In this document: one piece after another, positions 25,669 through 58,600 of the stretch
How the letters are laid out: each line of letters starts with the position of its first letter
How positions within the stretch are numbered: the first letter of the stretch is position 1
Assembly: GCA_030704615.1 (NCBI GenBank)
Contig: CM060734.1
Location: 35,898,001-35,962,000 of the forward strand
Reading direction: 5' to 3'
DNA: 64,000 nucleotides
Source of the DNA: Takakia lepidozioides
Taxonomy: Eukaryota; Plantae; Bryophyta
The notes under the pieces: generated by a model
Databases searched by the model: none
Told to the model about the DNA's origin: nothing
Seen by the model: the letters and a program-made list of their open reading frames with translations, nothing else
Position numbers and translations under genes: made by a program

Positions 25669-26029
25669 TCCTTCTTAATGCTATCAGAAATTGAGTCATC
25701 ACTGCATTACAGCTGACAAAATAGAAACTGCCTATGCAAATGCAATGGGAAGCTCAACCAGCCCCCCTCTTTGATAACTTGGCCCCACTGCTTTATTAGC
25801 TGCTGTTATCTCATGATCACTGAGAGACGAGCCGAGCACACGCTCTTTTGGCGACAACTTTCTCAGAGTGATCTCATGGATTCTGCATTATCTCATTCCT
25901 TAAAGCTTGCCCTAACTTCAACAGACTGCGCAAAGAGGAGAGAGAATCATAAAAGCTCGATGATAACAACAAGTTGTGTGCCTTCTCCACATGGCGGGCG
26001 GCTAGTACATTTTGAAAGCCTTGTTTAAT

Positions 26030-28392: not shown

Positions 28393-28581
28393 GTCATATT
28401 TATTTTGGGGCCAAGATCATGCGATGTGAAAACTTTGGAGAAATTGTTCAGAGCAGGAATGACAATTGCACGATTTGACATATCACATGGCCCAAAAGAT
28501 CATCTTCAAGAGGCTCTAACAAATCTCAAATCTGCTATGATGTCTACTCAAATTATGTGTCACGTCATGTTAGATTCTAAG
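28393..28581 (+). pseudogene. Isolated exon encoding a diverged pyruvate kinase N-terminal (barrel) segment
   Basis: VIFILGPRSCDVKTLEKLFRAGMTIARFDISHG...EALTNLKSAMMSTQIMCHVMLDSK, bounded by AG and GT, resembles plant cytosolic PK (TLGP...LEKLLRAGMNVARFNFSHG...CAVMLDTK). No further PK exons are in the window. Confidence 0.8.
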
Positions 28582-28779
28582 GTACATACTCTCACCATAC
28601 AAACATAATTAAAATTATCCAATGCTTTTATAAATTGATATTATATATTTATAATGTGATTATTACATCATATTATAACTTAAGAATATTATGTATTTTA
28701 TCTAAGACAAATAACGATAAATACACCTTAAAATATCAATTATATTTTCTTATTTTATTAATTAATATAGTGGTATTTA

Positions 28780-31376
28780 TTGTTTGTCTATTTATTAATG
28801 AAGAGAAAAACTATTCATTCCTCTCAAAGTGATAATACTAGTTATCATGAAGACGAGAAAACCAATTTACAACATTATTCAAAGATGGATATAGGCAGCC
28901 AAACCAACTCTGAAAACTTACATTTCACCTCCGAAATTGACTCTCGAAAGCCCAAGGCTCATTTGCAAGATAATTACAAGTGCTACCATTGGATTCCTTG
29001 CGTTCCGCATTCTGCTTCTAGCATATCTGTGTCTGAATCTCATGAGGCTGTTAAGACACCTACACAAGACAATCAGAATATGATACTACTTCTAATAAGA
29101 ATATTGTTTATGATGTTAGCAAGAAGATTAACGCTACTCCGACTCCTACATCTAATGACACTACTTCAATATCTAGTAATAGCATTCAATGTGACACGTC
29201 AAAGAATGCTTTTGCAACTGAAAAATTCATCGCAGATAATCCAATTATTCTTGATACTAAAGACGACCTTTTTTTCCAACAAACCGATGTCAACATCAAA
29301 TATAACTAAAATGTCTAATATTGATGTATCACCAAATAATGATACCATTGTTGAATCACCCATAAGACTTACTCCCACAAAAAATGATGACGATTTTATT
29401 TCTATATTCATGCAGCAAAATATTGAAGAAATATCATCAGAAAAATATAATATAAGCTCAATAGATATTGATGACAACCCTCATATCCTAATAAATGCAA
29501 GTTATGCACTCCAAGAGACTAGTAGCATAGATTCGTCCACTCATGATATAGATTCACCTCATTTTCAAAGAAAAAGCATTAGCCTTGATACACCCAAAGA
29601 TGTTACATGTGTTATCCCTAGTAACGACACTCATTCAACTAATTGGTCTGACGTATCATATGGTGTTGTGGCAAGGAGAAATACAATCATAGTTGACAAA
29701 ACTATTGAGGATGATACATCTAAGTGGACATATGTATCATATGGTATTGTTACTAGAAAAGATGTCAATAACATCTCAGAAAGATTGATTTATGATGTTA
29801 CAAACTCTATCTCTAGTGTCAATATTGGTTCCATTAATACACAATATAATGACGCAGTCCAAATAATACCTATTGACGAGAGTATTAGACATCATGTAGA
29901 GTACAATTCTATTGGAAATCCTTTTGATTTGCAAATCCAACAAAATATTGGTGATGTTGAAAATGACACTAATATAGATCGTACATCTAATCATGATGAT
30001 ATCATAACCGACACCAAGGAAATGACTGATACTTCGGAAAATATAGTGAATGTAGAATCTACACCTATTAATAGTGTGACAACTGTAATCAATATCCATG
30101 ATGAGATTATTGATGGTATTCCAGAACTTACACGATCAAATAATGTTGTTAATGATTGTTGTTGTATGCATAACACATTGAGTGTTGCCACATATCCTAT
30201 TGAGGATATTATTGATGATGATAAAGATACCAAAATGAACATTGACGTAGTAAAAGAGAATATCAGTATTCCTCTACATAGTATAAATAATTCTGTCAAT
30301 GATACTAGTGCGCTTGGAGATTCTAACAATCGTGATTTAATGTCTAAATGGTCATATGTGTCTTATGGCATCGAGAAGAAACTTATACTAACAAATCTGA
30401 AGAGATAATGTTACCTATTGATCACCCTCCTGGATGGTCCTATGTTTCATATGGTGTGGTGTTTAGAAAGAGCATTGTTGATGTTGATATACCCGAGAAA
30501 ATGATTGAAGCTCCCAGTTTACCTACAATTAGTGACAATAACGACCCTACAAGAGATAGTGATACCCCCGAACACTTTGTATTTATTAATAACAATATTG
30601 ATCATGACATGATATCTACACCACATATTGATACATTCTATGAAGAAACTGCATCTACTCATGACATGGGTGCTCATGATAATACCGTAGTAAATGTCAA
30701 TCCATCTAAACAGAACGTGGACATCACTAGTAATATTTTTGATGATAGTCATACAAATTCATCTCAATATAGTAAAATATCATCTACAGCAATGGACCGT
30801 CTCATTCATAATATACATCCACCCGATGAGACATCTCATACGCTTAACACTGATACACTAAGTTCAAATAATATGGACAATAACAACATAACATCTCCCA
30901 TTGATATTACACCAAATGTTAATGACACATGTCAAATAAATACTTCACCAGAAAGTATTGTTGCAAGTCCTCAAGATAATAAAACGTTGAATTCTAGCAT
31001 TATAAAAAATATGGGTTTATTTGGAAAAACAACTATAGGCCCTTCTTCTACAAGGGAAGCTTGTATGATTTTTCCTAACAAAGTTGATGGCAAGGTACCA
31101 AATTTTATTGTACTTTTAAGCATTATAACGATTAGCATATTGATTATTTTATTTAGAATATATATACCTCAATAACCACGTAACATTTTTGCATTGACAT
31201 AAACTTTATCAGGTCACATATGTAGCTCTTCCAAGCAAGACAAACGGCAAGGTATGTTTTCATTGATTTATATTACTTGATTAAATACTCACTCATATAT
31301 ATATATGACACTCTCTTTTTGTTGATAGATTATCTCAATTATTACATCAAGAAAGATATTATTACTATTTTCTTAA
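28780..31376 (+). pseudogene. AT-rich, frameshifted low-complexity (S/T/D/N/I-rich) gene with four W-S/T-x-V-S-Y-G repeats; probable 3' exons 31213-31251 and 31329-31376
   Basis: ORFs 28780-30408 and 30348-31175 are joined by a frameshift. Repeats start at 29644, 29725, 30349 and 30435. Donor at 31095 and AG/GT-bounded small exons follow. Confidence 0.55.
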
Positions 31377-34300
31377 AAATGTGAACAATTTTTATCACTT
31401 ATTTGTTATTGCCAGACATCATATAATAAAATAATAAAAATTAATTTAGTCTATTGACATGAATGATGTATTGTACGCCATACTATTACATATCTAGTAA
31501 GACTTCCAGTTGCTTTTGCAATGATGTCATATCTAATTAGGTCAATATCAGGTCTAGCATGCATGTATATTTGGTTTAATCTCATCCAGTTCATGGTAGA
31601 GTCATTACTAATTTCAAATTTCAATGGTTGTTCTTTCACAGGAATATAAAAGAAAATACACAGTTCTAAGGGCTAGGCATAAAAGACCAGAAAAATGCAA
31701 AGGTTTGATTCTTCAAACAACTGAAATATGTTTTGTGTTTTTCTCGTTTGCATAATATATCTTTGTTCCGAAATTTTATTATTATGTCGATTGTAAAGTG
31801 ATTTTAAAATGGTTGTCGACTTGTCAAAATGCAGATTTTGAACATCTTTTCAAGATTACTGAGGTCCTGAAAAAAGAAGGATTGGAAGAGATAGAGCGGC
31901 ATTTGCCATAACTTTTTTGTGGGTTATTCCTGGGCATAAAAAAACCCTGGATTTTAATGATTTTGCAATGTATTCAGAATGGGTACGAATTTACGCTCCG
32001 CATTAAGCTAATAACTTTGGGGGTAAATATAATGATTCTTTGGGCCAATCAAGAATTTCTTGCTATTACGAATTTGTACACACTTTACTTTTTACTTTTT
32101 ACATACTTGTGCACATTGGATAAATTTATGCAACTCCAACAAAAAGTTGCACAAATTTCTTTTATGTTAATTTAGAGAGTTTGCCTATTTATAAAATATT
32201 TTGCAAAGTCGTAAATGGAAGCCATTGAGGTTTACATCCAGGGATGAAGCACATAGCTAACGGCTCTATTTGTTCTTTCCCTTTTAATGCACCACGGCTA
32301 CGTTTGGAATGATGGAAGGAAAGGAGGGAGGCCCACACAGTGTATGTAGCCAATTCTTTTTGCCAGTTATCATTCTTTTGACGATCATGCTATGATCCCT
32401 CAGCGTATGAATTTCATCCTACTCACTAGGTCGTGGCCCTGTCTGCTATCATTTATAGAGCTAATGACATGATCAATAGATCAGTCACCCCTGCTAGGTG
32501 TGGATGTCCCGCATTGGCTTAGGCCTATGTCGCACATAGGGCCAAGCAACATTGCCCCTGATGAAGGATGGGATTCATGAACAAAGGTCCTGGAATGTTG
32601 GAGGATACCTGCCCCCAACTCAATAACAGCTACTTTGTTTGCTGTAAAAGAAAATGAGATGCGGAGAGAACTGTCACTCTGGATTCTGGACTAAGTAGGA
32701 ACATGCGAACTATTATTTGAAAGTTGAAGGAACCAAGAGTTTTGAACATTTATATAGACACCAGTCTGGGCTTAAATCCCAGCAGCTCCATATTGTCTTT
32801 TCTTTCCACATTCATCTGGCGTACTTCTTATGGATGCTATTCATATGCTAGAATACATGGTCAATGGTTGGTGCGTTGCTTCTTCACGGAGGGTGGTGCT
32901 TAGACAGACATATCTGCAGCCCTACTTGTCTGGGAAGTCAGGTCGTAGAGATACACCTTGGAATCATATGCAAGCCTATCTGGGTAGGCAGCTGTGGGGT
33001 GTCTTTTGAGTGAAGAGAATTGAGGGGGGGGTCTCTAGAGCAGGCAGACAAAGGTCCTTATGGAAGCTTCCCCACTGCACAGGCTACTTAACTCCCATGA
33101 TCCTGCAATTCCATATTGCTCTTCATCCCAAAGTCAACCAAAAATAGAGTATGGTTACTGCAAAGAAAAGATAAAGAATTATCCTTGTAGACTAAAGGGA
33201 CGGGAAAGATATAGAGAAACAAAGCTTAGGAAAATGGCCAAAAAAACCGCAAAAAGATAGGGGACTGCAACAAACTAGGTGTAGATGAGTCACCACAATT
33301 GAGTGCCTCGTGCAGATAACCTGAGACACACATTCTTGGTCTATACTGTAGACAAGCAGTCTCAGCCTATAGATTCACAAAATGCAGGCCAGAAAAGAAG
33401 GTGATGCTCTATCTCCACTTTTCACATGGTGGAAGCTTTACAACCCTAGCTTTACAAGGATTGTTAAATCCATCTACCAAGAAAGTGGAGATTGCTGAGT
33501 CTGAAAGCATCAAATCCCCTAGAAATTGGGAGAGAGATGTGTTTCACACACTTCCCAACATGGAGATTGGTTTGGCTGTGGAGGGACGCATTATACATAA
33601 TCCCCCCTTTCATAATAATAGAAAAGTACATGCTGTCTCATCAGTGGAAGTATGTTCTCGAGACAGTAAGGTCAGATCTTCCCACTGTCTTATCAAGAAA
33701 CGACCATGGACATAATCTCAGAATCAAACTCAGTTTTCTATATAGGTGACTGTCCCCATAACACATTGCCACAGTCTTTGTTGTGCCACAACACAAATTC
33801 ATAAGGGACGAGTGGCTTTCAAAATCAAGGCACAAAGGAGATGGCCTCCATGCTCTTGGGAATCACCATGACCATCAGAACAACCAGGCCACTCCATTCA
33901 GCAGGTTGGCATGGATAAATGGTTAATGGCAAGTTCTGCCAATCTTCCTGAGTAAACCACTTCAAGTTATGTTGAGATACCATATCTGTTGGGACAACTG
34001 CCTAAAGTGAGGCTGGAGCCAAACAGATCCTTGTCAGTGTTCCCCGTGTTCCCCGTCTGGGAAGTTGCTTGGTTGTGATGAGTAAAAAGGGGTCCTGAAG
34101 TTCAATTGCCAGCATGCCACTTTGTCCTCGCACGGTATGAAGTATGAACGGCACTTATTGAATAGGGGAAAACTTTCCTAGTAGGCCACATGCCTCTATA
34201 TGTCATTCTTCGTCATTCAAATACTCATTTAGCTCCAGCATTTTTTACGACAGGAGTTGTAGGATATCCACGTCCCCTTTGCAGCGATGATGTCGGCCTC

Positions 34301-39313: not shown

Positions 39314-40177
39314 TTAAATCCTGCTACATTGTCAGGTGTGTTCTGTTATTCTCCCCTGTCCCATTGGCAGTGACCCTTGAGCCTTGTGCTTGGCGCCTCA
39401 TGGTGAGGTGAACTTACTGTGAAAGAGGCTATTTTCTTCTCTCACTATAAGGGGCTGATTTGAGCTGTCGCTCCCAGGTGTTTCCCTTTGAAAAAATATA
39501 CATAATTTCTGCCTAGAGGGGCAGAGAGAGAGAGAGAAGACTCCGGCCGAAGCCGGCGTAACTAAGAGCCACTTTGCCTTGCGGATACTGCCCTCTTTCG
39601 GGGGTGGGCCTAGAGGGGCAATACATATACCCTAGGGGGTGAAGAATGAACGCGGAAACAACCAGTGTAAGTTGGACCCGTATATAGGTCTGGGGCGGGT
39701 GTCAACTAAGATAAGGATAATGGTATGAAGGATCATACCAGGCGGGTACGTTCAAGGGCAAGACCCGACAATGCCCTGCTGGGGGAGGGTACATGGACTT
39801 TTAAAACCCTAGCGCAAACCAGACCAGTCCGGGCTTCTTCCTTGCGCTACCACTCCAATACCATGTATGCGTTGGCTGGGGGAGAGAAGGGAGAGGATTT
39901 AGGGTAGGATTTAGGGTAGTTTTCATTAAGGATACTAATTAGGGATGCTAATGTGTTTGAAGAGGAGTAGATGAAATGCAATGTGTTCTTTGAAATACTA
40001 GTTTCACTTTTTGACTATCACAGCTGCTAGTTAGAAAGAACTGGCAGAATGTAATTTGGATGTACTTGAAGGTGATACCAGACCCTGGCACATACCAGGT
40101 TGGTATGCCTTTTAAAAATTTGTTTTATACCATACCAGTCAGATTTTCAGTTTGATACCATACCATATACCATACCA

Positions 40178-40512
40178 TGTAGTTGTAAATACTGCATATA
40201 GAGTATGGTATGAGGTTATGTCACTGATACGTTGAATCTTATTGCTGTAGTTTCTTGGTACATGGATCGTTAGCCAATGATCAATATTTTTGGCATTGGA
40301 AACCATTGCAGGTATATAACGTAAATCCATGACAACGAATAGTTACTTGTATGTAGTGCAAGAGTTAGCTGAGGCTCATGGCATGAGCCGCAATGCAGTT
40401 TGAGTATGTATGTGTGATCACGTGATCAATGATAAGTCTGATTCCCTTGTATTCATATACCGGAAGAGTGTAGTGTGATTTGTGCATGAGTAAACAGCCG
40501 AGAGTTTCAACA
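40178..40512 (+). repeat. 5' LTR of copia element
   Basis: Direct repeat of 44815-45147, about 95% identical by manual comparison, with TG...CA ends. Confidence 0.95.
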
Positions 40513-40526
40513 GGTTATGGGCCCAC
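40513..40526 (+). promoter_or_regulatory. Primer-binding site of the half-tRNA-iMet type
   Basis: GGTTATGGGCCCA immediately follows the 5' LTR, as in the Drosophila copia PBS. Confidence 0.8.
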
Positions 40527-40783
40527 GTATCACTTTCATGAAAGTTGTGCCGTGATAAGAAGTGATATGAGCATCGACTCTATGTCTACAAAGTTTGAGT
40601 CAAGAAAGTCGTCGTACTTGTGTCTGTGAGGTCAAGTTGTCATACCTACATGTATGAGAAGTCAAGTTCCACACTTGCATTGTGAGGAGTCAAGCTGTCA
40701 CGCTTGTGTAAGTTGTTTTTCTGTTTGAGTGCTGTAGGTGACTCTAAATTTCGGAGAGAGAGGTTTTTTTTTTTTTTCCAGTC

Positions 40784-41686
40784 ATGGGAGAATCAAAGGA
40801 GCTTGGAAACATTCGTATGTTCACAGGGCAGAATTTCCATATGTGGAAATTTCAAATGACGGCTCTGTTTTGAGGAAGGGAACTGATGGACGTGATTGAC
40901 GGTACCAGCGTGAAGCCCGCAACATCGAATGCTGAGGGTCTTGGCCTATGGATCAAGAAAGACAATCAAGCTGTGAGCTTGTTATGTCAGGCCATGGATG
41001 AGAAGACCATGAAGGGTTTTATGGGCAGCAAGACATCAAAGAAAATTTGGGACAAGCTGCAAGAGCTGCATGATCAGCATTCCCAAGAAAGCATGCACCA
41101 CGTTCAGCAACGGTTTTTTGATATTACCATGGAGGAAGACGACACCATTGCTGAGTTCTTGGGCAAGATTCAAGAAGCTCAATGTGAGCTGGCCAACCTT
41201 GGTGATAACACCTTCACTGACAATACCGTGATGGTGAAGATATCAGCCAATTGCCAAGGTGTTATGGACCGTTCCAGTCGTCGTGGGAGAACGTGCCTGC
41301 AGCCGATAGAACAATCAGTGTCATGACTGGGCGTCTAATTAGAGAAGAAGCAAGAATGCACGATATTGTAGTTAGGACAGGAAGCAAGAACGGAGGTGCC
41401 ACAGCTAATGCTGCCACGTTCAAATCAAAATTTGGATTGTCCAATGGATGACCTTCGCTCACCCCGGAGCAGTGGGAGCAGAGAACAAAAGAGATTGCTG
41501 AACGGAAGAAGTATACCACTTGCTTTAATTGTGGCGAGCCTGGCCATTGGTCACGAGAGTGTCGCAATGAGAAGAAGACTCATGAAAAGGCAGAAGAGTC
41601 AAAGGGTGCATCAACTGTGAAAACTCACCGAGCTTTCATGGCAGCAGGCCCTGGGCCGTGCTCATATAACTGGTACATGGATAGTT
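40784..41686 (+). pseudogene. Copia gag and start of protease (broken)
   Basis: FTGQNFHMWKFQM, KKIWDKLQ, CFNCGEPGHWSREC zinc knuckle, ending at WYMDS. Contains stops and frameshifts. Confidence 0.88.
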
Positions 41687-44269
41687 GATTGAATCTGTCA
41701 CGAGGCAGCGCTTTTGTAAGAACGTCGGCAACCTGATCAATAGTTGAAATGTAAGTGAGGCGGATCTCGTTGGTTGTCTCTGCTTCACGAATCTTGTGGA
41801 ATTTAACGTCAATATGTTTTGTGCGCCTGTGAAACTCATGATTACGAACAAGCCGAATGGCTGCTTGGTTATCACTGTACAGGATGGTCGGTCCTGCTTG
41901 GAAAAAACGCAAATCATGCAAAAATCTGCGTAACCAGATGATTTCTTGGCTTGCGAGATGAGCAGCAATGTACTCAGCTTCGGTAGTACTGGTGCCACAC
42001 CACAGGTCCTCCGTTGAGCATAAGAACATAGCCAGAGCGTGATTTCTGTCATCCAAGTCGTCTGCATAGTCGGCATCACAATAGGCCACAAACTGATTTG
42101 CATTGGTCCCGAGAGCACTAAAGGTGATGCGCGTTCCGGGAGAGCCGCGGAGATACTTCATCACACGTCGAAGTGCACCAACGTGAGGGACCTTTGGGGA
42201 CTCGCAAAACTTCACAGCATGTCCAACTGAATAAGTGACATCCACACGAGTGCCTTGACTCCACCACATTAGATTGCCAACACAAGACTGGTAAGGAAAC
42301 TGATCATCTGGCTCTCCTTCGCTAGAGACAAGCTCCATGCAGCTGTTTGGATCAGCGGGAATGGCAACTGGGGCGGAGTCTTCAAAACCAAATTTGGCCA
42401 GAACACGTTCAATATACCGCTGTTGATCAATGCAGATGGTGCGGGTGAAACGGTCACGATAGATATTCAATCCAACGTATATCTCAAGATGGCCCTCTCT
42501 GATGCTGAAGGCTTCCCTCATTTCATCTAAGACGTGGACAATGAGGCCATTCTGGACCCTGCATGTAAGGCCGTCATCGACAAAAATGCAAAGAATCAAG
42601 TGAGGGTCGATACGACTCACATATACACATGGATCAACGGTGTAAGGAACAAGTTGATGATTGGTGAGAAAACTGTTGAATTTTCGGTTCCACACACGTG
42701 AAGATTGTTTGAGCCCATAGAAGGCCTTCTTCAAGCGGCAGACTTGTTGTGGGTGGTCTTCATCAATGAAACCAGCTGGCTGCTTCCTCATCAATCTCTC
42801 CATACAAGAACGTTATACAAACATCAAATTGTGTAATTTCCATGTCCTCTGCAGCAGCCAAAGAGAGGATGGTACGGATTAAATCAAACTTGACCACTGG
42901 GCTATATGTTTCCGTATAATCCAGCCCCTCCTTTTGGGTGAAACCTTTTGCAACTAGACGAGCCTTAAAGCGTGCCACAGTCCCATCAACGGCCAATTTA
43001 ACCTTATACACCCACTTTGAACGTACCACCTTGCGTGCTTTGGACAAATCTTGAAGCACCCAAGTATCATTAGCAATTAAGGAATCATATTCTTCTTGCA
43101 TGGCGTTGATCCACTCCTTGAGACGTGATTGCTGCATCGATGTGGGTAGGCTCATCCGGTACGTTGATGCGACCGGTGGCAACGTTGCATGTGTAACTGC
43201 CTTTTCCAAAAGGGATGACCCAGTCGCCATAACGTGTGGGTGGGTGACGGTTGCGAGTGACACTGCCATCAAAGCCATCATCATTGGGCACAATGCTTGT
43301 TGGCGCTTCATCTGCATCAAATGTAGTAACCTCCGGTGGCGTGATGTGCTCAGGGTTGTCTGGGAGATCAAAAACTGCAGGTTCAACTCCCACTGCAAGC
43401 TGTTCCTCCTCCGCTACGTCATGTGGCAGATAGTCTCCCATTGCGCCCATGACCGCGCCTCCCACTGGTTGTTGTTCGAAAACAAGTCCGCTCAACTGGA
43501 CTATCGAAGAGTCAAGTTCGTCTGCATTGTCTCCCGTGGAGACGCTCTTCTCATCAAAAATTACATGACAACTTTCAACAATGCAGTGAGATTCATTATC
43601 CCAAAGGCGATATGCCTTACTGGTTTCACTATAGCCCATGAGAATGCAATGCTTGCTCTTATGGTCCAGCTTCTTGCATTGCTCGTCTGGGATGTGCACA
43701 TAAGCACTTGATCCGAAAATGCGAACATGACCCACTGATGGTTTTACTCCGTACCAGAGCTGGTATGGTGTGATCGATTCAAGTAAACGAGACCCAGTTC
43801 TGTTGAGCAAATACACAGCCGTATGGATCGCTTCTCCCCAAAAACGAGGGTGAACATTGCTCTCATGAATCATGCTTCTTGCGGATTCAAGAATGGTCCG
43901 ATTGTCCCTCTCCGCAACCCCGTTCTGTTCTGGCATGAATGCACATGGCTTCTCGTGCTTGGCATTTTGAGTGTCCATGTATCGCTCAAACTGCTCATTG
44001 CAGAACTCGGTTCCTCGATCAGATCTCAAAAACTTGAGATGATGTCCATTCTCTCGGTGCATCTGGCCCAAGAAGCGCTGCAAGCATGCTAAAGCAACTG
44101 TTTTTCGTTTGATACAATATATAACTCGAAAACTAGAATAATCATCCTTAAAGAGAGCAAAATACCTTGCTCCTCCGACCGTGGTGACATTGATAGGGCC
44201 ACACAGGTCACAATGAACGAGATCACTGATGGCTTTGCTCTTTTCCCGCTCGCTAGGGTCATCCTGTAC
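41684..44269 (-). pseudogene. Copia integrase-RT-RNase H, inverted relative to the LTRs
   Basis: LVHCDLCGP, LRSDRGTEF, PEQNGVAER, FKARLVAKGF, IFVDDG, YSDNQAA, DQVADVLTKAL. Confidence 0.92.
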
Positions 44270-44814
44270 GCTCAAGGAATAGGCGACATTGCATTCAAGA
44301 CCTGGATAAATGTGATCGAGAATATTGGCGTCCTGAAGGATGTTATGCATGTTCCTCGACTTGGAAGAAACCTATTCTCTACATCACAAAGAGTCCAACG
44401 CGGAATAAACACACTGCACACAACTGGAGGGTGTAGTCTTTTTGTTGAAGATGAAGTTGTCATGAAGGGTGTTGAATATGGAGTATACAAGCTCCTCATG
44501 ACTGTTGTGCTTCCTTCGAGCTCCAGTTAGCAGCATACCTTCTCTGCCAGCGTCATTGGAATCCAAAGCAAAAAGGAAAAAGCACGCAAACACTTGATAC
44601 CTGGCCCATGGAAATGGTGCTCGGTGACTCTTTCGGTAGGCACAACCGATGCAAAATTGAGGCTGCTCAGTTCTCTCACTGATGATCAGACCATCAACCA
44701 TATCACGAGACTCCATGTGTTTGATCATGTTGTGGTGAACATGACCAAGTCGTCTGAAGATGTTGCTGGGTCTCTTCGAGCCACCTCTGTCTCCAACCTC
44801 ATCCTGAGTGGGAG

Positions 44815-45147
44815 TGTAGTTATAAATACTGCATATAGAGTACGGTATGAGGTTATGTCACTGATACGTTGAATCTTGTTGTTGTAGTTTCTTGGTACAG
44901 GGATCGTTAGCCATGATCAATATTTTTGGCGTTGGAAACCCTTGCGGGTATATAACGTAAATCCATGGCAACGGATAGTTACTTGTATGTAGTGCAAGAG
45001 TTAGCTGAGGCTCAGGCATGAGCCGCAATGCAGTTTGAGTCTGTATGTGTGATCACGTGATCAATGATAAGTCTGATTCCCTTGTATTCGTATACCGGAA
45101 GAGTGTAGTGTGATTTGTGCATGAATAAACAACTGAGAGTTTCAACA
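44815..45147 (+). repeat. 3' LTR of copia element, preceded by PPT gagtgggag
   Basis: Direct repeat of 40178-40512. Confidence 0.95.
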
Positions 45148-47228
45148 TACCAGGATGTCAAATTTACACATCATTTGATACCAGTACCATACTGGCTTGA
45201 ATAATTCAACTCTACCCTAATACCATTACCCCAGTGGTGTAAAAAAACCATGATTACCAGTCCAACATTGGAAACAAATAGTATAAAGTTAACCATGGTT
45301 GAAGAAGCGTTAATAGCAAGTACCGTTGTCATGTTATGTTGTTCAAATTATGATATATAAATAAAGGTGAAAAAAGACAAATTAATGGGTGGATGTGAAG
45401 TACCGACGAAATGAATGGCGACAATATCGGATAATGAATCTAACGGTGGTGGTGCAATTTGTTCAGTAATCCAATTCCACGACCTAGAGTTTGAGGAAAA
45501 CTTACCAAATTTCCTCTCAATGCGCGTTTGGTGGGTGCCCATAGCTCTCGTGGGCATAGTACTTCTCGCCCTCAACCCCATGCCCTATCTCTACAAACAT
45601 CTATTCCCTTACCCCCCCCACTTATTCCTCCCAACCCCATGCCCTATATCTTCACCTCACACCTACGACTTTCTCTCGGGCAAGAAGGAAAATGACATGT
45701 CCTCAATAACCACTCGCCATTAACAACAATTGCATTCAAAGCACAATCATAAACAAACTCCCCTAATTAGATTGAAGTATACTCAACAATCTAACATGAA
45801 CTTATGTTTAGTGTATAACAGTTGACAACGACGTGTATCAACCATAGTCCATATGAGTATCAGGTACTATATTGGGGGCTTTAGAGGTGACAGAATAGGT
45901 CAACAGTTGGTTATAGGCCCCCTTACCCAACTAAGAGCCGCTTTACACATGCCACAAATGAGTACCCAAAGTGTGGTGGTCATTGTGCATTGGACTAATT
46001 TGGTCTTTAGACCCACTTTATTCCATGGAAAACTCAATGTCAATGGGACTCCAATTCGCCCATGTGGCCAATTGCAGAGGACAAAGTTTGGATCCCATGT
46101 TTATGCGGAATGGCCAACAGAGAATCTGGGCTTTGCCATTGTTCAGCTAAGCATAGCAACACCTATTGGGCCAAGCGATTTGGTTACCATTAATAGTAAA
46201 CGGCTAAAGTAAAAAAGCCTCAATAATAGTGGGTGGACAGTTTACACTTTACACTAAGGGGGTCAGTGAAAATAGTTTGATTGCTCATTTCATGGCCTTT
46301 GCCTAGAGATATCCTAGCCTGTGCCTATTCGACACAGTTGAAATTTTCTCTGTGGAGCAGGCAAGATGGTTGAGTGTGCATTCACTGCCTCCACATAACC
46401 ACATCCTGGGTTCATCAATTCTAAGTTCAACATGCGCATTCATTGGCTCTACACAAGGTGATAAACAGAGAAAGTCTCAAATGTGACATAAATTTTGCCT
46501 TCTAATGTAGAAAATTTATGTCCATTCAGTGTTTTGTGCAAAAACGTGGAGCTTCCAACATCTTTTTCCTTTTAAACTGATAGCACACTCTGGATGATGA
46601 GGAATCACGTGGCATGGATGGAGCATACAAGATATGCAAAAGCCTCAAGTGCACGCGAAATGTTGCAACGGAGAATCTGCATGCATGGGGAAGGAATGTC
46701 ATGGGCATCAATGCAGCAATTGAACTCTACTCTGACCTAGACCTCCAGATTGCCAGACACCCATGTTTCACCCAGTATCTGATCATATGACAGACAGAAG
46801 AACCCCTCTGCCAATATTAGTCCCCAATTGGTAGCTTAGAGCCACTACCATCCTTTACTTGTAAAAGTCATTGACTGTCCTTCGATGAAATTAGGGCTCT
46901 TGCATGAGAATAACTCAAGATGACATGGCCATCTGATGCATTATGTCCTTCATTGCAACATTATGGCAGTCGCTAGTATGTCCACCTCAACCAAATGATC
47001 ATTTGACATAAATTGGTGTTAAAAAGACGTCACGAAAGGTGCGCCTATGTCATGTTGTCCACATTAGTGTTCCTACAAGCATGAGTCAAACAACATTTGA
47101 CAATGTGCCAGTGGAGCAAAACAGAGCTTACTTTTTTGAGGCTCTAAATTAGAGTAAATGAATTGTGGACTAACCTATTCACAGAGTTGAGTTACAATGA
47201 TCCCGGGAATCTGGTGCACACCAAATGG

Positions 47229-50200
47229 TCAGGTCTTATGGAGGATGTACTTGACTGCCTCATAAAACGACACAACAATGCCCACAGAAGGGCCTGCTCG
47301 TGCCACTCGGGGACCTACTCCTGTGAAGAGCCCTCGCACCCCATCCTTCCTGCACCACAGAACCCATGCTCCATCATATGAAACAACCCTCCACCCATTT
47401 TTTGCCTTCCACATGTAAATTCAACATTTAGTGGCACTGCTTTGTTTCAGTCAAAAACGAAGTTTAAACACCCAAAAAAAAGAACATAAACTGTGCCCAG
47501 GAGCTTACCTCCATATTTCAAGCAAAACCTGTCGAGTTGTCATCTTCATGGCCTTCAAAGGATCTTTCTGCAACATAATGACTCGGACATTGCAATTTGT
47601 GAGTTCAATAGGCCTATTGCAAGTACAGCAAATTTCAGAAATGAGCTCGCTGCTACCTATGCAGGTTCATCTAGTAAGAACCATTGTCAAGATGGTCAAC
47701 ACACCCGTGCAGCCTTTAAGCCTAATCATATGCTTCAAAAAATCCAGTCACTGACAAATTGGCTGACATGACAACCTCAGTAGCCATAGAAGTGACAGAA
47801 ATTGCAAGGGGGAACCTACCTCAATCTGGCGTCGTGTCTTAGCGACATCCAGAGGGCAGGTGACAGCTGCTGCAATGCTGCCAGCAAGTACACCTGCTGA
47901 AAAATTAGCTCCCACTACAGTGGAAGCATTTGGCTCTGGCCCTGCTTTTATGAGTAGGGACTGCCTTACCTGCACATCCAGTTTAGGGTAAGATTACCCG
48001 ATTGTCCTAGATTAGCTACAAATAAAAAGGTTTAGACTGACAACTCTCCTACCTGCTCCACACATCATGCAAAGCTGAGAATAAAATACACCACTTAAAA
48101 CTTCATGGTCACAATTCCAGGCAAGGGCAAACACTACCGTTGGTATCCAGGCACTGCAGCCAAAATCACTTTCACTACAGTCATAAGCCAGCCTACATCA
48201 TCTACCCACAAGCTAAGTGGCTAGCAGCTCAAAGAGACTGCCACCGATCCCACAGGTTGATTTTCTTGCTATCAAAGTGAGCTGCTAACAAGCTTCTGAG
48301 CATGCGCAAATTTACTAACATTTCAATCCGGATCACACCTTCCATTGCAACTGAGATACTACCCAGAACCGGAGGAGAGGCCAGGTAGATGAAATTTTAC
48401 AGGCTCCAAGGTAGTCCAGCAGATGGCAGAGAAAGGAACATCCCGTACTAATTGAGCGCCGACTCCTGTCCACAGCAACCGAATTCCCTGCACTGTTCTC
48501 CCAATCCTCCAGCAACCCACACTCCTATGTGAGATACTTTTCAAATGAGGCATCATGGAAATCTCTTGCTGTGGCTAAGAACTTCCAGCATAACCTCACA
48601 CCTCAGCTACAGGACCTGAAACTACCCCTGTGGAGACTGCTTCCAAGCTTCCAGCTATGTACAAGGTTGTACCCAACCTTTCAAATGACTTTTCTATACA
48701 AATACCATCCAGCAGTTCTTCCTAATTTAACTTTTTACTATACTCTATGGACCAATGTGAACTCAGATTAAATATGTCTGTCATGTAACTTAATGGGCAC
48801 ATCCATCAATCTTCTCATACATCCCAGTTGACATAATCATTTTCTGCCCTAACTCAGTAAAGGACACTACAAAGATTGCGGCGAATATGCTGGCAAGGAT
48901 GACTAATGTGAAGACTCAAGCCTGACACCAATGTAGATGAGGATCAGAGAGTAGCTATCAAGTGGGGATGTGGACGCATGGGAAGATGATGAATGCTTAC
49001 AGCGACCCCCTGGCACACCATCAACAATGATGGGAGCACCGCGAAGAACATCCCACATCCCGGGCAGTGTTCCACCCCTCACTCCCTTGTGGGCCTGCAT
49101 GTATCCCACAATGGTCATATCAGAAGGGAAAATTGATTAAAAACTCCAATAGCACAAAAGCAAAAAGAGGCGTAATCAAACTTTTCGCTATGTAGCTGCT
49201 TCAAGTTAAAATATAGAAGCCTGGCCAAGCTTCCATTGTGGTCCTCCACCGCCTGTTGCTGCTTCTTGGCCTTGGGGGTTACCTTTCACTCTGCTCAGTG
49301 TGTTACAATTGGAGTATGATCTAGGGTCTTGCCCATTTTCTCTTCACAAAAAGAAAGAGGAACGTAATACAGAAGTCTTTAGGACTCCCAAGGGCTTATT
49401 TATTCCAGGCATCTGCCCTCTTGAGACATTAGATTTTCCAGTTTTCTTGAGGTATTACATAAAAACATTTTCCTACAAAAGTCCTCATGCATCTTGCCCC
49501 TTTCCCACAGAGAGAGAGAATGTACTCATAAGACGTTTGCCGTAGCCTTGTGGCCGCAGAGAGAGAGACAGAGAGAGAGAGAGAGAACTACCTGCATCCG
49601 TGTCCTTGCAAGCTCAATAGGAGAGCAAACAATACAAGCTATTGATCGTGCAATCGACCCTGCTAGCAAAGGTGCATATGGCTTCAAACGCAACCCATGC
49701 TCCTCTGAATATCTCTCTATTTTTTCCCGAAGTATGTCGTAAAACGGCAGATATATACCCACCTGTCCAGCAATAATTCCAACACAAGCAATCCCCATGA
49801 ATCTCTGCTTTCTGAAAAGAGCTCTGCAACATGAACTGCACGAATTTCTTTCTAATCCATCCATGTGTCCTGGGACGCTCATGAACTGGCGAATGCAAAG
49901 TTCACTGGCAACACATGCAAGTGATTAGAAGCTTCACGACAAGGATGATTCTCTTACGGTGGGTACAGCAATAGCAAGGGCTGCATTGGTGCCTCTCCAG
50001 AGTCGGAAGAATCCCTCCTGCACAGATAAAGGTTCTTAGGAGAGAGTCTATACGCTGGAAGTATGCCAAACATGAATCTTTTCATCCCTCAGTATACAGC
50101 AGAATTTCCATAAGCATGCCAATCAAAATTTCACTAGCTGCCAGGAGTAGACTTCACTTCTCTCCAAGAGGCATGTACAACAGGACAGACTTGATGTATC

Positions 50201-51651
50201 AATATATGTAAGTAATTTCTCATTTGGTGGACCATCTTCAAAGGGCCAAACTATGCAAAGAGAGATAAAGCTCAAAGTGCAAGGGAGACAGGTGGGCGTA
50301 CTCAATAGACCAGGTCTACTGTAGCCATCTGACGATAGGATTGACATCAAATTGACTACACACCAACCTGCCGGACAACATTCTGAACCACATCCCATGT
50401 GCTCTTGTACTGGAAAGGTCCTGGAGGTGGGCATACAGGAGCCACTGCTGCATTGCCAGTTCGGGGACATGTGGGAGGACATCGTCCATCTACCGCAATC
50501 TGTGGGCAAACCAGGTTAGTCAGTGAATCCTGTTCCACCATACAACTAGACAGATATACCCCAAAACTCCTCCACCATCACCAGGTTTTCCCCACATTTG
50601 AGTGCCTTGGGACAATGCAAGCCATGGGAGAGGAACCATGTATTCTGTTACCCTAATCCTGAATTGGTAAGAATGGAATGTCACCCAGATTTGATATTTG
50701 ACTTACACTTGAGAAGTGGCTCAACATGCTCATACTCCCTGGATGGAGCAAATGTTTAGGTGCTCCAATCAAATTGATTAATTGGTGGAACCTCTTATGC
50801 TTGAAGCACTCTCCATGAAACTTCAGACAAAGGAAAGGTGCTTGGAGCGAAAAAAATAAAACCCATAACTGTTCAATAAGTTGGAGGCAGCCAACCCACA
50901 TCATGTAAGAAAACCTTGTGACCTGCCAACTTGCCTCACTACCTTGCCTGAGCCGAGGGGTTCCATGGCGCATGCCATTCTGTCATGGTAGGCTACTCCA
51001 GCTGCCTGCGCTTGCAATCTTGTCTGCAAAACATATCCACCAATGACGGTAACATCGAGCACGTTAGAGCCTGTTTTATGCTGTACGTTCTCTATTAGAA
51101 AAATATAGGGAAGTCCAAAGTCTTCTCCAGCTATTAAATTTCTAGGAATCACTCGTTACCTCTGCCCTATCCACCCTAATTTCGAGAGAGCCTGGCTCAA
51201 AGCCTGCACTGATGCGTCTCTCTAGGGTAAAAGCAGTGGAATAATTTAAGCAGGGATCGGTAGCCATTTCAGGCTGGCGCAAGTACAGCCACAGACAGGG
51301 GTAGGAGCGAACGAGAAAGAGGGAGACCTTGGCAACATCCAGAGGATTCACGATCACAGCTGAGATAATCGCAGCAGCTGCTGCAGAAATGGCCCTTTCC
51401 CTAAAATCAATAGGTCTTGGTGAAGGTTCTCCCACATCGATCCGGGTGCACTCCGTCATTCGTCGTATGCTTCTCAATTGGCCGAAGGGTCCTGGACTAG
51501 ACAACTCTTCTTGCCTCTCTGATGCATGCGCTGAATTCACTGCAGCAATCGATAGACCATCGACCCTCAATTGTTGAATCAGAAAGGATGACAAAGATTG
51601 GGACGGCTGTGCGGGCGCCCCCATTGCCGAATTCCCACCCCTTTCATTCAT
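47229..51651 (-). CDS. MTM1: Mitochondrial carrier, MTM1/SLC25A39-40-like; exons 51651-51328, 51023-50943, 50529-50368, 50017-49958, 49762-49592, 49094-49001, 48492-48401, 47969-47820, 47567-47509, 47349-47229
   Basis: Three carrier signatures: [22 protein letters not shown] and [11 protein letters not shown]. Also [10 protein letters not shown] and [19 protein letters not shown]. Splice phases are consistent; the start codon is tentative. Confidence 0.9.
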
Positions 51652-52058
51652 CACCTGTGCGCCCTATCTATCTACCTACACCGACGCTTCCCAATGACCT
51701 AGATCTCTTCAATGACTCAAAATGCGTCGCTACAACGACCCTGTACCACCGCAGTCAGGATTTGTGAAGCTCGGAAGCTCCAGCTCAAAATCTTTTGAAG
51801 CACCACAGACGCCAATCCTTGGGAGCGCCAGCAATTCAAACGCACTTTCTCATACTGTGGCAGTCGTCCTGCTAGGGTTTGCTTTGCACACTGGCCCGCA
51901 TCGTCCAGGCGCCCTCTCCTTGTGATGCCAGCTGCAGCCGTGTGAGACCTGCCACGTCGCCTGTCGGGGGAAAAGAGACTCAAAAGAGCATTTTTTTCTT
52001 TTTGCTTACAACAGGGGACAGTGGCCCTGATGAGAGCGTTAACTTTATATTCTTGTAC

Positions 52059-52221
52059 TAAGAAACAAAAAAAAAACAAAAAAAAACAAAAACCAATAAA
52101 CATAAGAAAATTAAAAAAATCTATGAAATGAACATGTCATAAGTAGAATCCAGGTCCCTGTTCATTTCATAGATTTTTTTAAATTTTCTTATGTTTATTG
52201 GTTTTTGTTTTTTTTTTCTTA
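52059..52221. repeat. Long inverted repeat (hairpin), ~55-60-bp arms, 24-nt loop
   Basis: aaaacaaaaaccaataaacataagaaaattaaaaaaatctatgaaatgaaca is the near-perfect reverse complement of tgttcatttcatagatttttttaaattttcttatgtttattggtttttgtttt. Confidence 0.9.
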
Positions 52222-54448
52222 CCCCCTAAGACATGAAGCCTAATACTTATTTTGAGCTATCTCTTCGTTTTTAATACATGTAAATACCCAACGATAAAAC
52301 TCAGGTTATAGTTCAATTAGATAAGATGTGTTAAATATGTTTCTAATTCAATTCTGATTTCACCCTTATCTATATAATCTACTCTTTATTCAAACATATA
52401 CCTTGGACTAGATAAGGCCTATCCATGTCCTACTTATATATACCGTATCCCCGTAAAATAATATACCTAACGGGCCGAATGCAGGTCCACACTATGGTTG
52501 TTATTTAAACCATCCCAATAGGTGTGAATCAGGTAAATGCGGTTTTGTATATACCGTGGGGTGACAACTAGAAGTTATTTACAAGATATACAATTATATG
52601 TTATCATAAATGACTTACTTCATTGATAATCCTTTAGGAATTAATCTAGATTATGTGAAATAATTCAAGATTGAAAAGGTTAGTTTACAATCCAACTTGA
52701 GAGGGATTATTGCATAATAGAGGATTATTCAAGTTATTCAGTGTTATTGAGTCTCCATGGTGTCTTAGAGCTTTGTATCATTCTCATTTATAAAGTGTTG
52801 GCTTTGCCCAAGAATTTAAACAAAATAGAGCCTGGATGTAAATAAGAAGGGGAGGAGATATTACCTCTAGTTTTATCATAGCTAGAAGTTAACAATAATT
52901 CCGGTAGCATGTTTTATGTTCTAAATATGGTTGTTTCCACTTTTCCACCGCTATGGCCCAACATCATCACAATTCTAAGTCCACATGTCGCTTCAATTTG
53001 TGAGCATCTTCTACTCGATTTCATGCCTTTCTCCCCTTCCTATCACTTTTAGGTTCTCTACCTACTGGGTGGCGCTCTTCTCAATAGAGATGAATTTGTC
53101 AAGCATGGCTACCAACCCTTTCCATACTATACCTTTCAAAGTCAACATTATAATTGAAGCTCACATTTGTAATAATACTTTTAAGGTTGATCCCCTTCCC
53201 CTCCCCTCCTCTTTCATATCCACCATATACAAACAACAATTCAAATACGCCACGACGATACTTCAATAGCACATAAACCAGCCACTTGTCTGCGTAGAGA
53301 AGAACTTATTGTTTGGAACGGAATTCAATATGCTGAATCGTTTGGCAAAATCATAGAAAAATCTTTCTTCACGGAAGACATGTTAAATTCAGAGTATTTG
53401 CTACAGTCATCGTGATTCATTAGTTGATTTTATTTTTTCGGATTTTGTTCCACTCTAATTCCCAAATCTCACAAAGGCTTCCTCCCATTTCTTTAAATTT
53501 TCTTTAAAAAATCCCAAATTTTATGTTGGGGATTACAATTAGTTCCTCTGTCCATTGATGGATGAAATACCAATTTTGCTGTAAGAATGTATTGTTGAGG
53601 ATGGTGTGATCCTCTTATACCCTTTGTTTGTCCACAAGACCATTGCAAGATATAAAGATCAATATGGCTACATATGTATTGACAATGGAAAACAAAGACC
53701 ACAAACTTTACACACCACCCAAAAATGAGTTGTTCAAAACCACAAGTCTAGACAAAAAGAAAAACTTTATAACTTTACTTCTCTCACATAAATATTATAC
53801 ATTTTATTGGCTCTGTCCCAATTTACTTGGGATAGAGGCATTGTGGGGACTCCTTATGAGCGGGTATAGGGTGGCCAAAATTCCAAAAAATGAACTGAAA
53901 ATGACAGTTTTTCATTTTTTTGGGATGAAAAGACACGTGTCAGCAAGTTTAGGACTTAGGAAAAAGAAAAAGAAACCATAATCTAACCAAGAGTAGCACA
54001 CTATGCCATGATTGTTCTAGTGGTTATCATGAGTGCTCTTAAGACTTTCTATTCTAAGAGGTTGTGGGTTCAAAACTGCCACACCCTATTTTTTGGAACA
54101 AACTACAATTTCCTCATTGCCCTAAGATTCTTTAGGATTGTTTAGGGTTTCGCATTCATTTTCGAGCTCATCTTCTTCGTTTTTGCTCTCATCTTCTGCA
54201 CCATCTTGTCGTCTTTCTCCATGACCTACTCGTAAAGTAGGCGGCGCATTAAGTAACCTATGGAGCGGCGCAGTTAAGGCGCACATGGAGCGGTTTCATT
54301 CTTCCAAAGACATTTTCTTGAGGTCATCCAGAGGCAATCCAAAACGGATTCCATAGCTACATTTGTGAGTGTAAGCTTGCTCCCACTCCCTCTCTCTCTT
54401 TGCATCCTTCACCCTCTAGTCCGTGTTGTGGTAGCAGTTGCTTTCACA

Positions 54449-55835
54449 ATGTCTGATGTAGCACCGAAGGAAGGCAGGATAGTAGTCACAGTGAATGACT
54501 TGAATTATGGAATCCAAGATGTTGCCTTTGAGGCGAAAGTGTTGAACAGATATAGCACCTTTGATCAGATTGCCAACAAGACCATGGAAGATCCAGGTTA
54601 TGTTTACTTGCACTGTGATTTGCTAGATAAGACAGCCTTGACCACAGTCACTTTGAGAGTGAAGTCACCCTTTATAGAAATGCATGAGCACTCTTTGCAA
54701 AAGGGAATGTATGTGAGGGTGGAAAATTTCGGGATGGACTCAAAATCCAAAAGAGGTTTTGAGAAAGGCGATATGTATGTGGTCATAACAGTTGAGTCAA
54801 CCACAACCGTGCCTTCAATTCCTACCTTTGAACCTGAGTTGATTCCCATGTTTTTCCACACGAATTCCATAAGAGAGTTCCGAGCCTCTCTTCAGAATTG
54901 GGCATGTGTCACCCTTGCTGTCATTGTTACTGCAGTAAGGGGGGAGGACAAGATACGAAGGGTGAAAAACAACTAATGATTGCAGATGAAGAGGGAGAAT
55001 TTGACCAGGATGTTCATGCTATGGGGAGGAATTTCAAAACAGAATATGATCAAATCGTGGAAGCATACAATGCTGGCCAGTGTGTTATGGTCATAATCAA
55101 GAATGTTACAACAACGTCCAAAGGAGATCGGCATTTGAGAGCACAACCCCACACAATTTTCAGCAGGGTTGTTGATGAAAGCGTTCGAGCTCGTCTTCTT
55201 CATTTGCACAACAAATTTACCAGTACTCAGCCCACAGTCAGAGAGGTAAGTCATTATATCTTCCTTTGTTTGTATTGAATTTTTTGCTATCAATTCTAGT
55301 TAATCTGTACCTTATTCTAAAATAATGTAATCCCAGATTTTCTCAGGTTATCCGGGTGCTGTCCATACTCAGCCCTGCTGCCCCTCCATTTCAGAAAGTA
55401 TGTGAGCACTGTCGTGTATCAAATATCACCATCTCTCCGACCGGCGATGTTCATTGTAACGGCTGTCGTTTGAAAACAAAGTTCACAAGTCAGGTTTTCT
55501 CCGTGCCTCCATTGCAACCGACACTGAACCTGTGTTGCTAACCATTGAGGGCAAATGGCTCGAGGCAATCGTGCATATGGTAGAATCCGAGTTCCTCAAT
55601 TTTCCTCGTCCAAAACAGGTTCAGCTCCTCAACAGAATTCACATTCGTGGTAAATTTCAGTTGAGCCCCACATCTGCCCTTGATGGTTTTCAATAGGACA
55701 TTCAACAATCAATCCTTAAAACAGATTTTCCTGTGGATTTGGATGTAACCCCTTTGGTAGCTCGTCCTGGTCCATCGAAATTAGGACCATCTGATGATGT
55801 GCAACACGATGTGAAACGCAAACTTCACTTTTAAT
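54449..55835 (+). pseudogene. RPA70-like OB-fold ssDNA-binding protein (Helitron cargo), frameshifted; intron about 55246-55346
   Basis: OB-like segments (FEAKVLNRY...LHCDLLD...LQKGMYVRVENF), a C4 ribbon (CEHC...CNGC), and position upstream of the Rep-Hel gene. Confidence 0.6.
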
Positions 55836-56368
55836 GATCTGGAATCAATTTCCAGTCAGAAAACCTCCTAAACACTTGGTGTTTTTGAAAATAATTTTTA
55901 GTGCATCATCCTTGCTGTTCTCTTCTCTTTGAGATAAGCAGCTTGTGATGTGAAAAACTTTTATATTATAATTTTGTAGCCCTTACTATAGTATTTTTCC
56001 CATTGTTGTTTTCAGGGTACAAAGAAAGGTTTCGTATTATATATAGTTTTCATTTGTAAATAAGTTCTTTGTACATGGTGGTTTTCACATCATCATATGT
56101 GATCAGTTTTCAACAATTCAAATGATATTCTAAGCGGTTATATACACAAAGCGGTTTCTATGTAAGCGGTTTTTATGTAAGCGGTTTCTATTAAATGGTC
56201 AAACTTATTCAAACCCAATCTTTATTGACAAAATACAGTTCATATTTACATTCATTTTTTAATTGGTTGCCGGGCAATATTTCAGTTCTCGGTCTAGTAT
56301 CCAGTTTTCAAATCTAGTTCTTAAATTTAAATCTAGTTCTTACATCTATTTAATTAAGATTCATAATA

Positions 56369-58418
56369 ATGGGCACAATTACACCGGATCTTCTTCATTC
56401 TTCATTTGATCATGTCTTACATTCATCTGGACTTCGTCTAGTTTCAACATATAAATATGAAGTAGGCAATTGTCTATTTGATTCTATTTCTTATCTATTA
56501 TAAAATGAAATGTCGTCTCTTCAATTGAGGCAAAACAGTATGACATATTTAAGTCAATGTTTATTATTAAATACAGAGAAAGCCCAACAATGTCGCATTC
56601 GAGAATTGAATCCAGATTTTTTGTTTGATTTACATCAAGGTGCCGTCTTAAATGAACATGAATATGTGAGAAAAATGTCACAAAGTGCTACAATTGGAGG
56701 TCTGTGGGGAGATTTCACTTCAATTTTCTGGATAGCAGAATATTTACAAAGGCCAATTTACATTTGGAATAAAGTATCAAAACATATAATGTCTCGATGT
56801 GGAATGGATTTTCAATCTAGCCCCTTACATATAGCTTACAATGGTCAACATTTTGAACCAATTGAGTATGCCAATGATGCACCTACGTCTCTACCTTTTT
56901 CTCAAACAAATGATCCTCAAGTAATCATAAATTTGGATGAATTTCCATCTCTCTCAGAATCAACAACACAACAACCATCTAGTCAATCTCCACAAACAAA
57001 GTTACGTTTCACTTGGAATGAAAAATTAGACTCTACATTGATGGACCTTTTGAAAAATAATTCTACTTCACAATTGGATTATATTGCCCCACTATTCAAC
57101 ACTTTTTGCAATACAAATATTACCCAAAAACAAGTTAAAAACAGTATTCAATACATTAAAAGAAAAATGAAACAGTGTCCCTCAGGTTTCATCTCCACCC
57201 CTTACAATTTCCATTCCAACAAGTCAACAAATTCCTAATATGCAATTGTCACACTCCTCTCCAACCATTACTTCCAATCCCACACAAGAAAAAATAAATA
57301 AATAAATCGATTGGACACTTTATGACAACAAATTTTTTGAATTATTACAAACTTGTCCAAATCTACCTTATTCTACAAAAGCATCCAAATTCATTAACAT
57401 GTTTCCAAATATTTAAAAGAACAATGTCACAAATTATTAATCACATGAAATATTTATATAATACAAATTCAAGTAAATTTGTCACCAATAGTGGTGTCCC
57501 TCAGGTTTCGTCTCCACCCATTTTAATTTCCATTCCAACAAGTCAACAAATCCCTAGTATACAATTGTCACACTCCTCTCCACCCAATATTTCCAACCTC
57601 ACACAAAAAAGAAAAAGAGAATATTTTGATTGGGCAGTTTATGACAACAATTTTTTTGATTTATTACAAACTTATCCAAATCAACCTTATTCTACAAAAG
57701 CATCCAAATTCATTAACATGTTTCCAAATATTAAACGAACAATATCACAAATTATTCATCACATGAAATATATATATATATATATATATATTAAAAATTC
57801 GCATAAATTTGTTACAAACAACAAAGTTCAATCACCATATATTGAATGCACTTCGGATGAGATCAAACAACCACCTCATGTGCAACAACATACTGAAACA
57901 AATGAACATGCACATAAATCAATATACATTGATATCTATAATGAACAAATTCAAGATGTTCCTATAATTCCTTGTTTTTGTTGTGAAAGGTTGTGCTTTT
58001 TAAAACAACTAAAATTTCTTTCAAAAAAATTGTCAAAAAAACTTTCCGTATACTTTCAAATTCAAATAGACCCTACATTATGCATATGTACAAGTTGTCT
58101 ACGTAACATTAATGAAGATAAACCGCCTTTGTATCAAGTATCAAATAAAATTTCTAGAAATAAAATCATTTCATCAGTCCAAAAACTAACACAATTAGAA
58201 GAATTCAAAAATTGGGCAACGCTTTTCTTAATGCTCAACAAATGTCTGCTCAACTTGCTGCTTATCTTGTGCTTTCTTTACCGTTATATCATTCATCTCG
58301 AGCTTTTAAATTTATAAACATTTCTCCTTATGAAGACCGTGCTTTTGTGTTAAAATCACAAGCCGCATTGAATCAACTAGAACCAGATTCAACTGATATT
58401 ATGTGTTCATCAATTGCA
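56369..58418 (+). pseudogene. Helentron Rep-Hel N-terminal part: OTU protease, Myb/HTH-like repeats, Cys-rich region, Rep C-terminal fragment
   Basis: GNCLFDSIS (then a premature TAA at 56501), LWGD and YNGQHFE form the OTU motifs. Also PCFCCERLCF...CICTSC...LTQLEE and KLGNAFLNAQQMSAQLAAYLVLSLPLYHSSRAFKFIN. Confidence 0.8.
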
Positions 58419-58468
58419 AAGTTAGAGCTTTAGGGCGTGAACTGACAGATGAGATGCCGCAGAGGTAG

Positions 58469-58600
58469 GACACATGAAAACCATCATGACCTAGAGTGGG
58501 TAGGCTGAATGATGGCTTTCATCCAATTCAGGCAGAGGCAAGACACATAAAAACCATCATGAACTAGAGTGGATAGGCTGAATGATGGATTTCATCCAAA
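58469..58600. repeat. Short direct repeat, 2 copies (~73-bp period)
   Basis: gacacat.aaaaccatcatga.ctagagtgg.taggctgaatgatgg.tttcatccaa occurs at about 58469 and 58542. Confidence 0.8.

Follow-up and report, generated by a model that had tools for sequence, protein, structure and literature searches.

Five reordered and reoriented pieces of polyprotein between the long terminal repeats of a Ty1/copia element in the moss Takakia lepidozioides

How does a retrotransposon that is still flanked by both of its long terminal repeats (LTRs) come to carry its coding interior in five pieces on alternating strands? The question is raised by a Ty1/copia element of 4.97 kb (positions 40178-45147) in a stretch of 64,000 nucleotides of the Takakia lepidozioides genome (assembly GCA_030704615.1, contig CM060734.1, positions 35,898,001 to 35,962,000; hereafter the window), the interior of which is arranged A(+) D(-) B(+) C(-) E(+). 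The observation holds and lies well outside what chance would produce. The explanation favored here is that an old copy of the element probably went through one complex double-strand-break event, the fragments of which were put back together by non-homologous end joining.

Full-length copia polyproteins were gathered by a whole-library HMMER search with the 392-aa open reading frame (ORF) for reverse transcriptase (RT) and RNase H as query, and 30 full-length, colinear polyproteins were combined into a profile hidden Markov model (HMM) of 1321 positions. Each piece of the broken polyprotein was handled on its own in searches and alignments, and its stop-free peptides were compared with the profile one by one. 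The closest colinear relative among those fetched is L006, a 4.6-kb Logan contig with an 818-aa gag-protease-integrase ORF and a 509-aa RT ORF (47-49% identical to the element). The interior is made up of the following pieces, listed in their present order.

40513 to 41685, forward strand: piece A, leader, gag (Retrotran_gag_2 with the zinc knuckle CFNCGEPGHWSREC) and the first protease residues, ending in WYMDS (Pfam; profile positions 6-288)
41683 to 44263, reverse strand: piece D, integrase core, SH3-like domain, RT and RNase H, from (VQ)DDPSER to RFNQL (Pfam; profile positions 473-1312)
44264 to 44605, forward strand: piece B, C-terminal two thirds of the protease barrel and linker, from (ILYA)QGIGD to TLDTW (positions 37-80 of 81 of Pol_BBD; profile positions 320-405)
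44606 to 44756, reverse strand: piece C, GAG-pre-integrase or integrase zinc-finger region, RRLGHV...CIGCAYRKSHRAPFP (profile positions 425-473, E = 2e-9; 53% identity to L006 residues 436-482)
44754 to 44814, forward strand: piece E, last polyprotein residues (L)KMLLGL..., stop and polypurine tract GAGTGGGAG (read from the sequence; the L006 polyprotein ends in PRDKFERMRQMIGLTARE followed by its stop)

Among the Pfam matches, gag lies on the forward strand and rve, SH3_retrovirus and both RVT_2 halves on the reverse strand; Pol_BBD is matched on the forward strand at 44213-44530, over its positions 37-80 only. The high-coordinate end of piece D falls somewhere within 44258-44269 and the start of piece B within 44261-44276. 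The junction between the two, which an earlier note made from the letters of this DNA had put at ~44269/44270, exists as described, but its exact position may be anywhere in 44258-44272. The separate HMM searches placed the peptides of the four larger pieces as follows.

41485 to 41685, forward strand: peptide of piece A, profile positions 217-288
44261 to 44506, forward strand: peptide of piece B, profile positions 320-405 (E = 1e-13)
44758 to 44606, reverse strand: peptide of piece C, profile positions 425-473 (E = 2e-9)
44257 to 41679, reverse strand: peptides of piece D, profile positions 473-715, 811-930 and 932-1312 (E = 4e-90, 3e-56 and 2e-136)

On the profile, the pieces fit side by side along the polyprotein and nowhere overlap: A extends to position 288, B covers 320-424, C 425-473, D 473-1312, and E the last ~9 positions. 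The same map is obtained when 12 full-length polyproteins are used singly as tblastn queries, with gag and the start of the protease at 40.8-41.685 kb (+), the end of the protease at ~44.26-44.55 kb (+), the pre-integrase region at 44.755-44.61 kb (-), and integrase through RNase H at 44.25-41.68 kb (-); tblastn with L006 gives it again. In L006 the corresponding stretches follow one another as ...YWFVDS, GCTEHM...AMLQV, HGIGD...SLDTW, HRRLAHV...NPFP and TNEPRTKAQLPGDLIH, with PRDKFERMRQMIGL at the end, and the ends of the pieces in the element coincide with these points (WYMDS; QGIGD-TLDTW; RRLGHV-APFP; DDPSER-RFNQL; KMLLGL). Separate alignment of each piece confirms the boundaries to 1-3 residues. 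Pfam, the 30-protein profile, tblastn, L006 and the separate alignments thus bear out the five-piece map that the earlier note had drawn.

A-B-C-D-E is the ancestral order, because every relative reached, L001-L006 as well as the 12 full-length polyproteins used as tblastn queries, is colinear. Copia-type gag, protease, integrase, RVT_2 reverse transcriptase and RNase H are all represented in the element by Pfam and profile matches. As it stands, they do not lie in the copia order of gag, protease, integrase, RT and RNase H on one strand; instead gag and the start of the protease (+) are followed by RNase H, RT and integrase (-), the end of the protease (+), the pre-integrase region (-) and the C-terminal end (+). 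Undoing the rearrangement alone recovers the copia order, and the element is therefore a rearranged member of Ty1/copia and not a different family.

What is missing from the tiling is small. Between WYMDS and QGIGD, ~32-36 protease codons are lost, among them those for the remainder of the DSG motif of the active site, and tblastn and profile searches of the whole window for this segment returned chance-level matches only. The His codon between B and C is destroyed. The earlier claim that the peptides rejoin in the order A-B-C-D-E with part of the protease missing agrees with the tiling, and the missing part can now be given this size and described as absent from the window. In a self-comparison of the window only the two outer LTRs repeat, with no internal duplication and no part of the element present a second time; since no internal DNA is duplicated, the content of the element was conserved and not copied.

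The five ancestral breakpoints are clustered in 3.1 kb, and the fragments between them have been reordered and reoriented as A D- B C- E. The ancestral adjacencies are A|B, B|C, C|D and D|E; the derived ones join the end of A to the end of D, the start of D to the start of B, the end of B to the end of C, and the start of C to the start of E. By our own derivation, the adjacency graph of both sets is a single cycle over the four adjacencies (double-cut-and-join distance 3), and therefore at least three two-break operations are needed, as the earlier note had also stated for simple inversions that reuse breakpoints. A path of three inversions exists, in which steps two and three each re-break the junction made by the preceding step. 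We estimate the chance of serially re-breaking two junctions at the ~10-nt resolution of the map, under uniform breakage, at ~(20/4300)^2. Neither inverted or direct repeats nor palindromes were found at the breakpoints, the only matches being 10-24 nt long, at chance level and none of them at a junction. As read from the codons, the overlaps at the junctions would be 0-3 nt, in the range of end joining; the microhomologies of 3 bp that the earlier note had placed at the A/D (AGT) and C/E (CTG) junctions are plausible on this codon-based reading.

A single multi-break event is the most parsimonious reading of this pattern, because serial inversions must re-break two earlier junctions within a few bases. 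Four or five breaks would have occurred within the 3.1 kb, with three or four clustered in the ~600 bp that surround the protease/integrase boundary, and the fragments would have been rejoined by non-homologous end joining as A, D-inverted, B, C-inverted and E. One fragment of ~100 bp from the protease active-site region would have been lost in the process, and the other ends would have been trimmed by no more than a few bases. The event most likely took place in the chromosome, after insertion, which is a simpler timing than one before integration. The single shatter-and-religate event proposed in the earlier note is accordingly kept as most parsimonious, its alternative of multiple template switches is disfavored by the exact tiling, and nothing in the data points to the extrachromosomal cDNA or the repair process inactivating transposable elements (TEs) that it had suggested as possible. 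That the breaks are confined to the element is not remarkable; it is expected, because a shuffle is visible only within coding sequence.

Several points weigh against a single chromosomal event. The self-comparison of the window found no same-family copy, and a whole-library HMMER search together with a word search of public collections found no protein above ~54% identity. Best protein identities of 50-54%, and the lack of an intact same-family copy for comparison, mean that breakpoints at the DNA level, microhomology and small filler can only be inferred, and slivers of a few bases that serial inversions had displaced would go unseen. A single copy also cannot tell an event before integration from one after it, and an exact-sequence look-up of three junction-spanning ORFs of the element found none of them recorded elsewhere.

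The outer anatomy of the element is as follows.

40173 to 40177, no strand: 5' copy of the target-site duplication (TSD), TACCA, read directly in the sequence
40178 to 40512, forward strand: 5' LTR, 335 bp, TG..CA, 95% identical to the 3' LTR
40513 to 40525, forward strand: sequence resembling a primer-binding site (PBS), GGTTATGGGCCCA, directly adjoining the 5' LTR
44815 to 45147, forward strand: 3' LTR, 333 bp, paired with the 5' LTR
45148 to 45152, no strand: 3' copy of the TSD, TACCA, read directly in the sequence

The LTRs are direct repeats with TG..CA ends; 15 substitutions, of which 12 are transitions, and two 1-nt indels separate them. The polypurine tract GAGTGGGAG abuts the 3' LTR. 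The LTR pair and the TSD named in the earlier note were thus found again, the LTRs being 95% alike and TACCA standing on both sides. The TSD is weaker evidence than usual and a chance match is not negligible, because the element sits in a local ATACC-rich repeat. This flanking DNA is microsatellite-like (40100-40177 and 45148-45200) and has a similar motif, TTTGATACCA(T/G)TACCATA, on the two sides.

The scramble could predate the insertion, the locus then being the integration of a rearranged, non-autonomous progenitor copy or cDNA that was mobilized in trans. The intact LTR ends, putative PBS, polypurine tract and 5-bp TSD around a scrambled interior would suit this, as would the undisturbed leader and gag region, which is the usual site of packaging signals. 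Against it, a chromosomal event that falls wholly inside a 5-kb element is not improbable (a chance of ~0.2 given that it overlaps the element), and shuffles can be detected only in coding sequence; moreover no second copy is present in the window or in public protein collections, and the same multi-break event would still be needed with a transposition step added, which is not simpler. A scramble before integration is therefore judged unlikely. Three successive simple inversions that were repaired separately (B-C-D first, then C-B, then C) would suffice by our derivation, but the second and the third would each have to re-break the previous junction within the ~10-nt resolution of the map, and no inverted repeats or palindromes lie at the breakpoints to serve as hotspots, which makes this series of inversions quite unlikely. 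Replicative template switching that copied A, D-, B, C- and E in turn, either by fork stalling and template switching or microhomology-mediated break-induced replication (FoSTeS/MMBIR) at a replication fork or by strand switching in plus-strand cDNA synthesis, would fit the 3-nt overlaps suggested at two junctions, which suit microhomology-primed switching, and the one missing segment. Against it, copy-based mechanisms yield duplications, triplications and arbitrary ends, and nothing in them favors a single copy of each segment, whereas here each segment occurs once, three boundaries meet the end of another segment within 1-3 residues and there is no internal duplication; inversions, furthermore, are not produced by reverse transcription when the RNA templates share one polarity. 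Such switching is improbable here.

An assembly artefact, in which the true locus is colinear and the segments were flipped by the assembler or polisher, has to be considered, since the scramble is known here from assembled sequence alone. The window is free of Ns and gaps, the junctions lack repeats that make assembly graphs ambiguous, and a real loss of ~100 bp goes with the shuffle. Known long-read chimeras, in addition, take the form of fold-back duplications; conservative flips in place, here of 150 bp, 340 bp and 2.6 kb, are not among them, and there is little likelihood that the arrangement arose in assembly. The most improbable explanation is a mixed origin of the pieces in several nested or adjacent family copies, or else that the locus is an autointegration (suicide) product. 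Copia elements often nest, and inversion circles arise by autointegration in copia elements of plants (PMC7197481). Independent fragments would tile at three boundaries by chance with a probability of only ~(3/1321)^3, and both processes require LTR sequence or an LTR end at an internal junction, where there is none, the LTRs being direct and outermost. A nested second copy was rejected because extra LTRs and overlapping coding fragments are both lacking, and the earlier note's own proviso that the segments might come from different nested elements was checked with the same outcome: there are no extra LTRs, and the pieces tile. Autointegration was rejected since no LTR end lies at an internal junction and only two LTRs, direct and outermost, are present. 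Homologous recombination between inverted copies was rejected on logic, as each element would stay colinear.

A single event of breakage and end joining in the chromosome resembles known systems in part. Chromothripsis- or chromoplexy-like rearrangements share with the element the clustered breakpoints, the random order and orientation of fragments, the loss of one fragment and the conserved content, and presumably also the little or no homology at junctions. The scale in the element is tiny in comparison (3.1 kb within one transposon, the fragments ranging from ~100 bp to 2.6 kb), and its single-event nature is argued from parsimony instead of copy-number states or reads. The inversion circles made by autointegration in Ty1 and in SISYPHUS of Arabidopsis (PMC7197481) likewise carry an inverted portion of a copia-type interior and arise without host sequence. 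In autointegration, LTR termini become joined to an internal target, and the circles that result have inverted LTRs, unlike the element, in which the LTRs are direct and terminal within the TSD and none of the internal junctions contains an LTR end.

The copy is dead through several stops and frameshifts besides the scramble. Piece A has two in-frame stops and one frameshift in gag. In piece D the RT is frameshifted near 42790 and RNase H carries a double indel (42048-41992), and piece B has one frameshift in the linker near 44510-44530. Within the open 392-aa RT-RNase H ORF, ~19 codons of RNase H at 41992-42048 match the copia profile only in another frame; the two compensating indels leave the ORF open and ruin part of the domain. 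The divergence of the LTRs puts the age of the element at roughly 2 million years.

The scramble is a repair scar without function, of a known kind in unusually tidy form, and is neither a new type of element nor evidence of a dedicated process. As such the locus would be a neat, codon-exact case of kilobase-scale multi-break repair by end joining in the plant germline, suited to teaching. It also holds a caution for annotators of TEs, for whom a copy like this would be split into several fragments on opposite strands. A wider reading is that the genome of T. lepidozioides gathers small conservative in-place inversions and shatter-and-rejoin events far faster than those of other plants, which we regard as rather unlikely; it would envisage frequent clustered DNA breaks and end joining in a high-altitude, UV-exposed moss. 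If such scars are in truth unusually common here, they would offer a read-out, in sequence, of the history of break repair under extreme radiation stress. No sign of flipped exons was seen among the host gene exons near the element (14825-15568 and 47229-51654).

The sequence GGTTATGGGCCCA that follows the 5' LTR would seem to pair with the anticodon stem-loop of initiator tRNA-Met and not with its 3' end; the window contains no tRNA gene. In this the element presumably resembles the half-tRNA-primed Ty1/copia elements, such as Drosophila copia and yeast Ty5. Half-tRNA priming is known from Drosophila copia and Ty5, and a half-tRNA PBS in this copia element, if true, would mark a lineage with closest proteins only ~50% identical. 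A second PBS-like match at 45909 has no LTR context and was taken as chance.

Elsewhere in the window, an exon of PAXNEB/ELP4 lies in the ORF 14825-15568 (-), and the exons of a mitochondrial-carrier gene (47229-51654, all on the reverse strand) are found just downstream of the copia element. Most of the window has 43-50% GC. In an AT-rich block at 26000-32000 (30-36% GC), the very long ORFs 28780-30408 and 30348-31175 (+) are rich in WSYVSYG-like repeats. Another at 52000-64000 (30-35% GC) holds a Helentron-like transposon with a PIF1-type helicase ORF (60559-62352, -) and an APE-type endonuclease ORF (59601-60374, -), and within the same block there is a weak match to an OTU protease at 56510-57238 (+).

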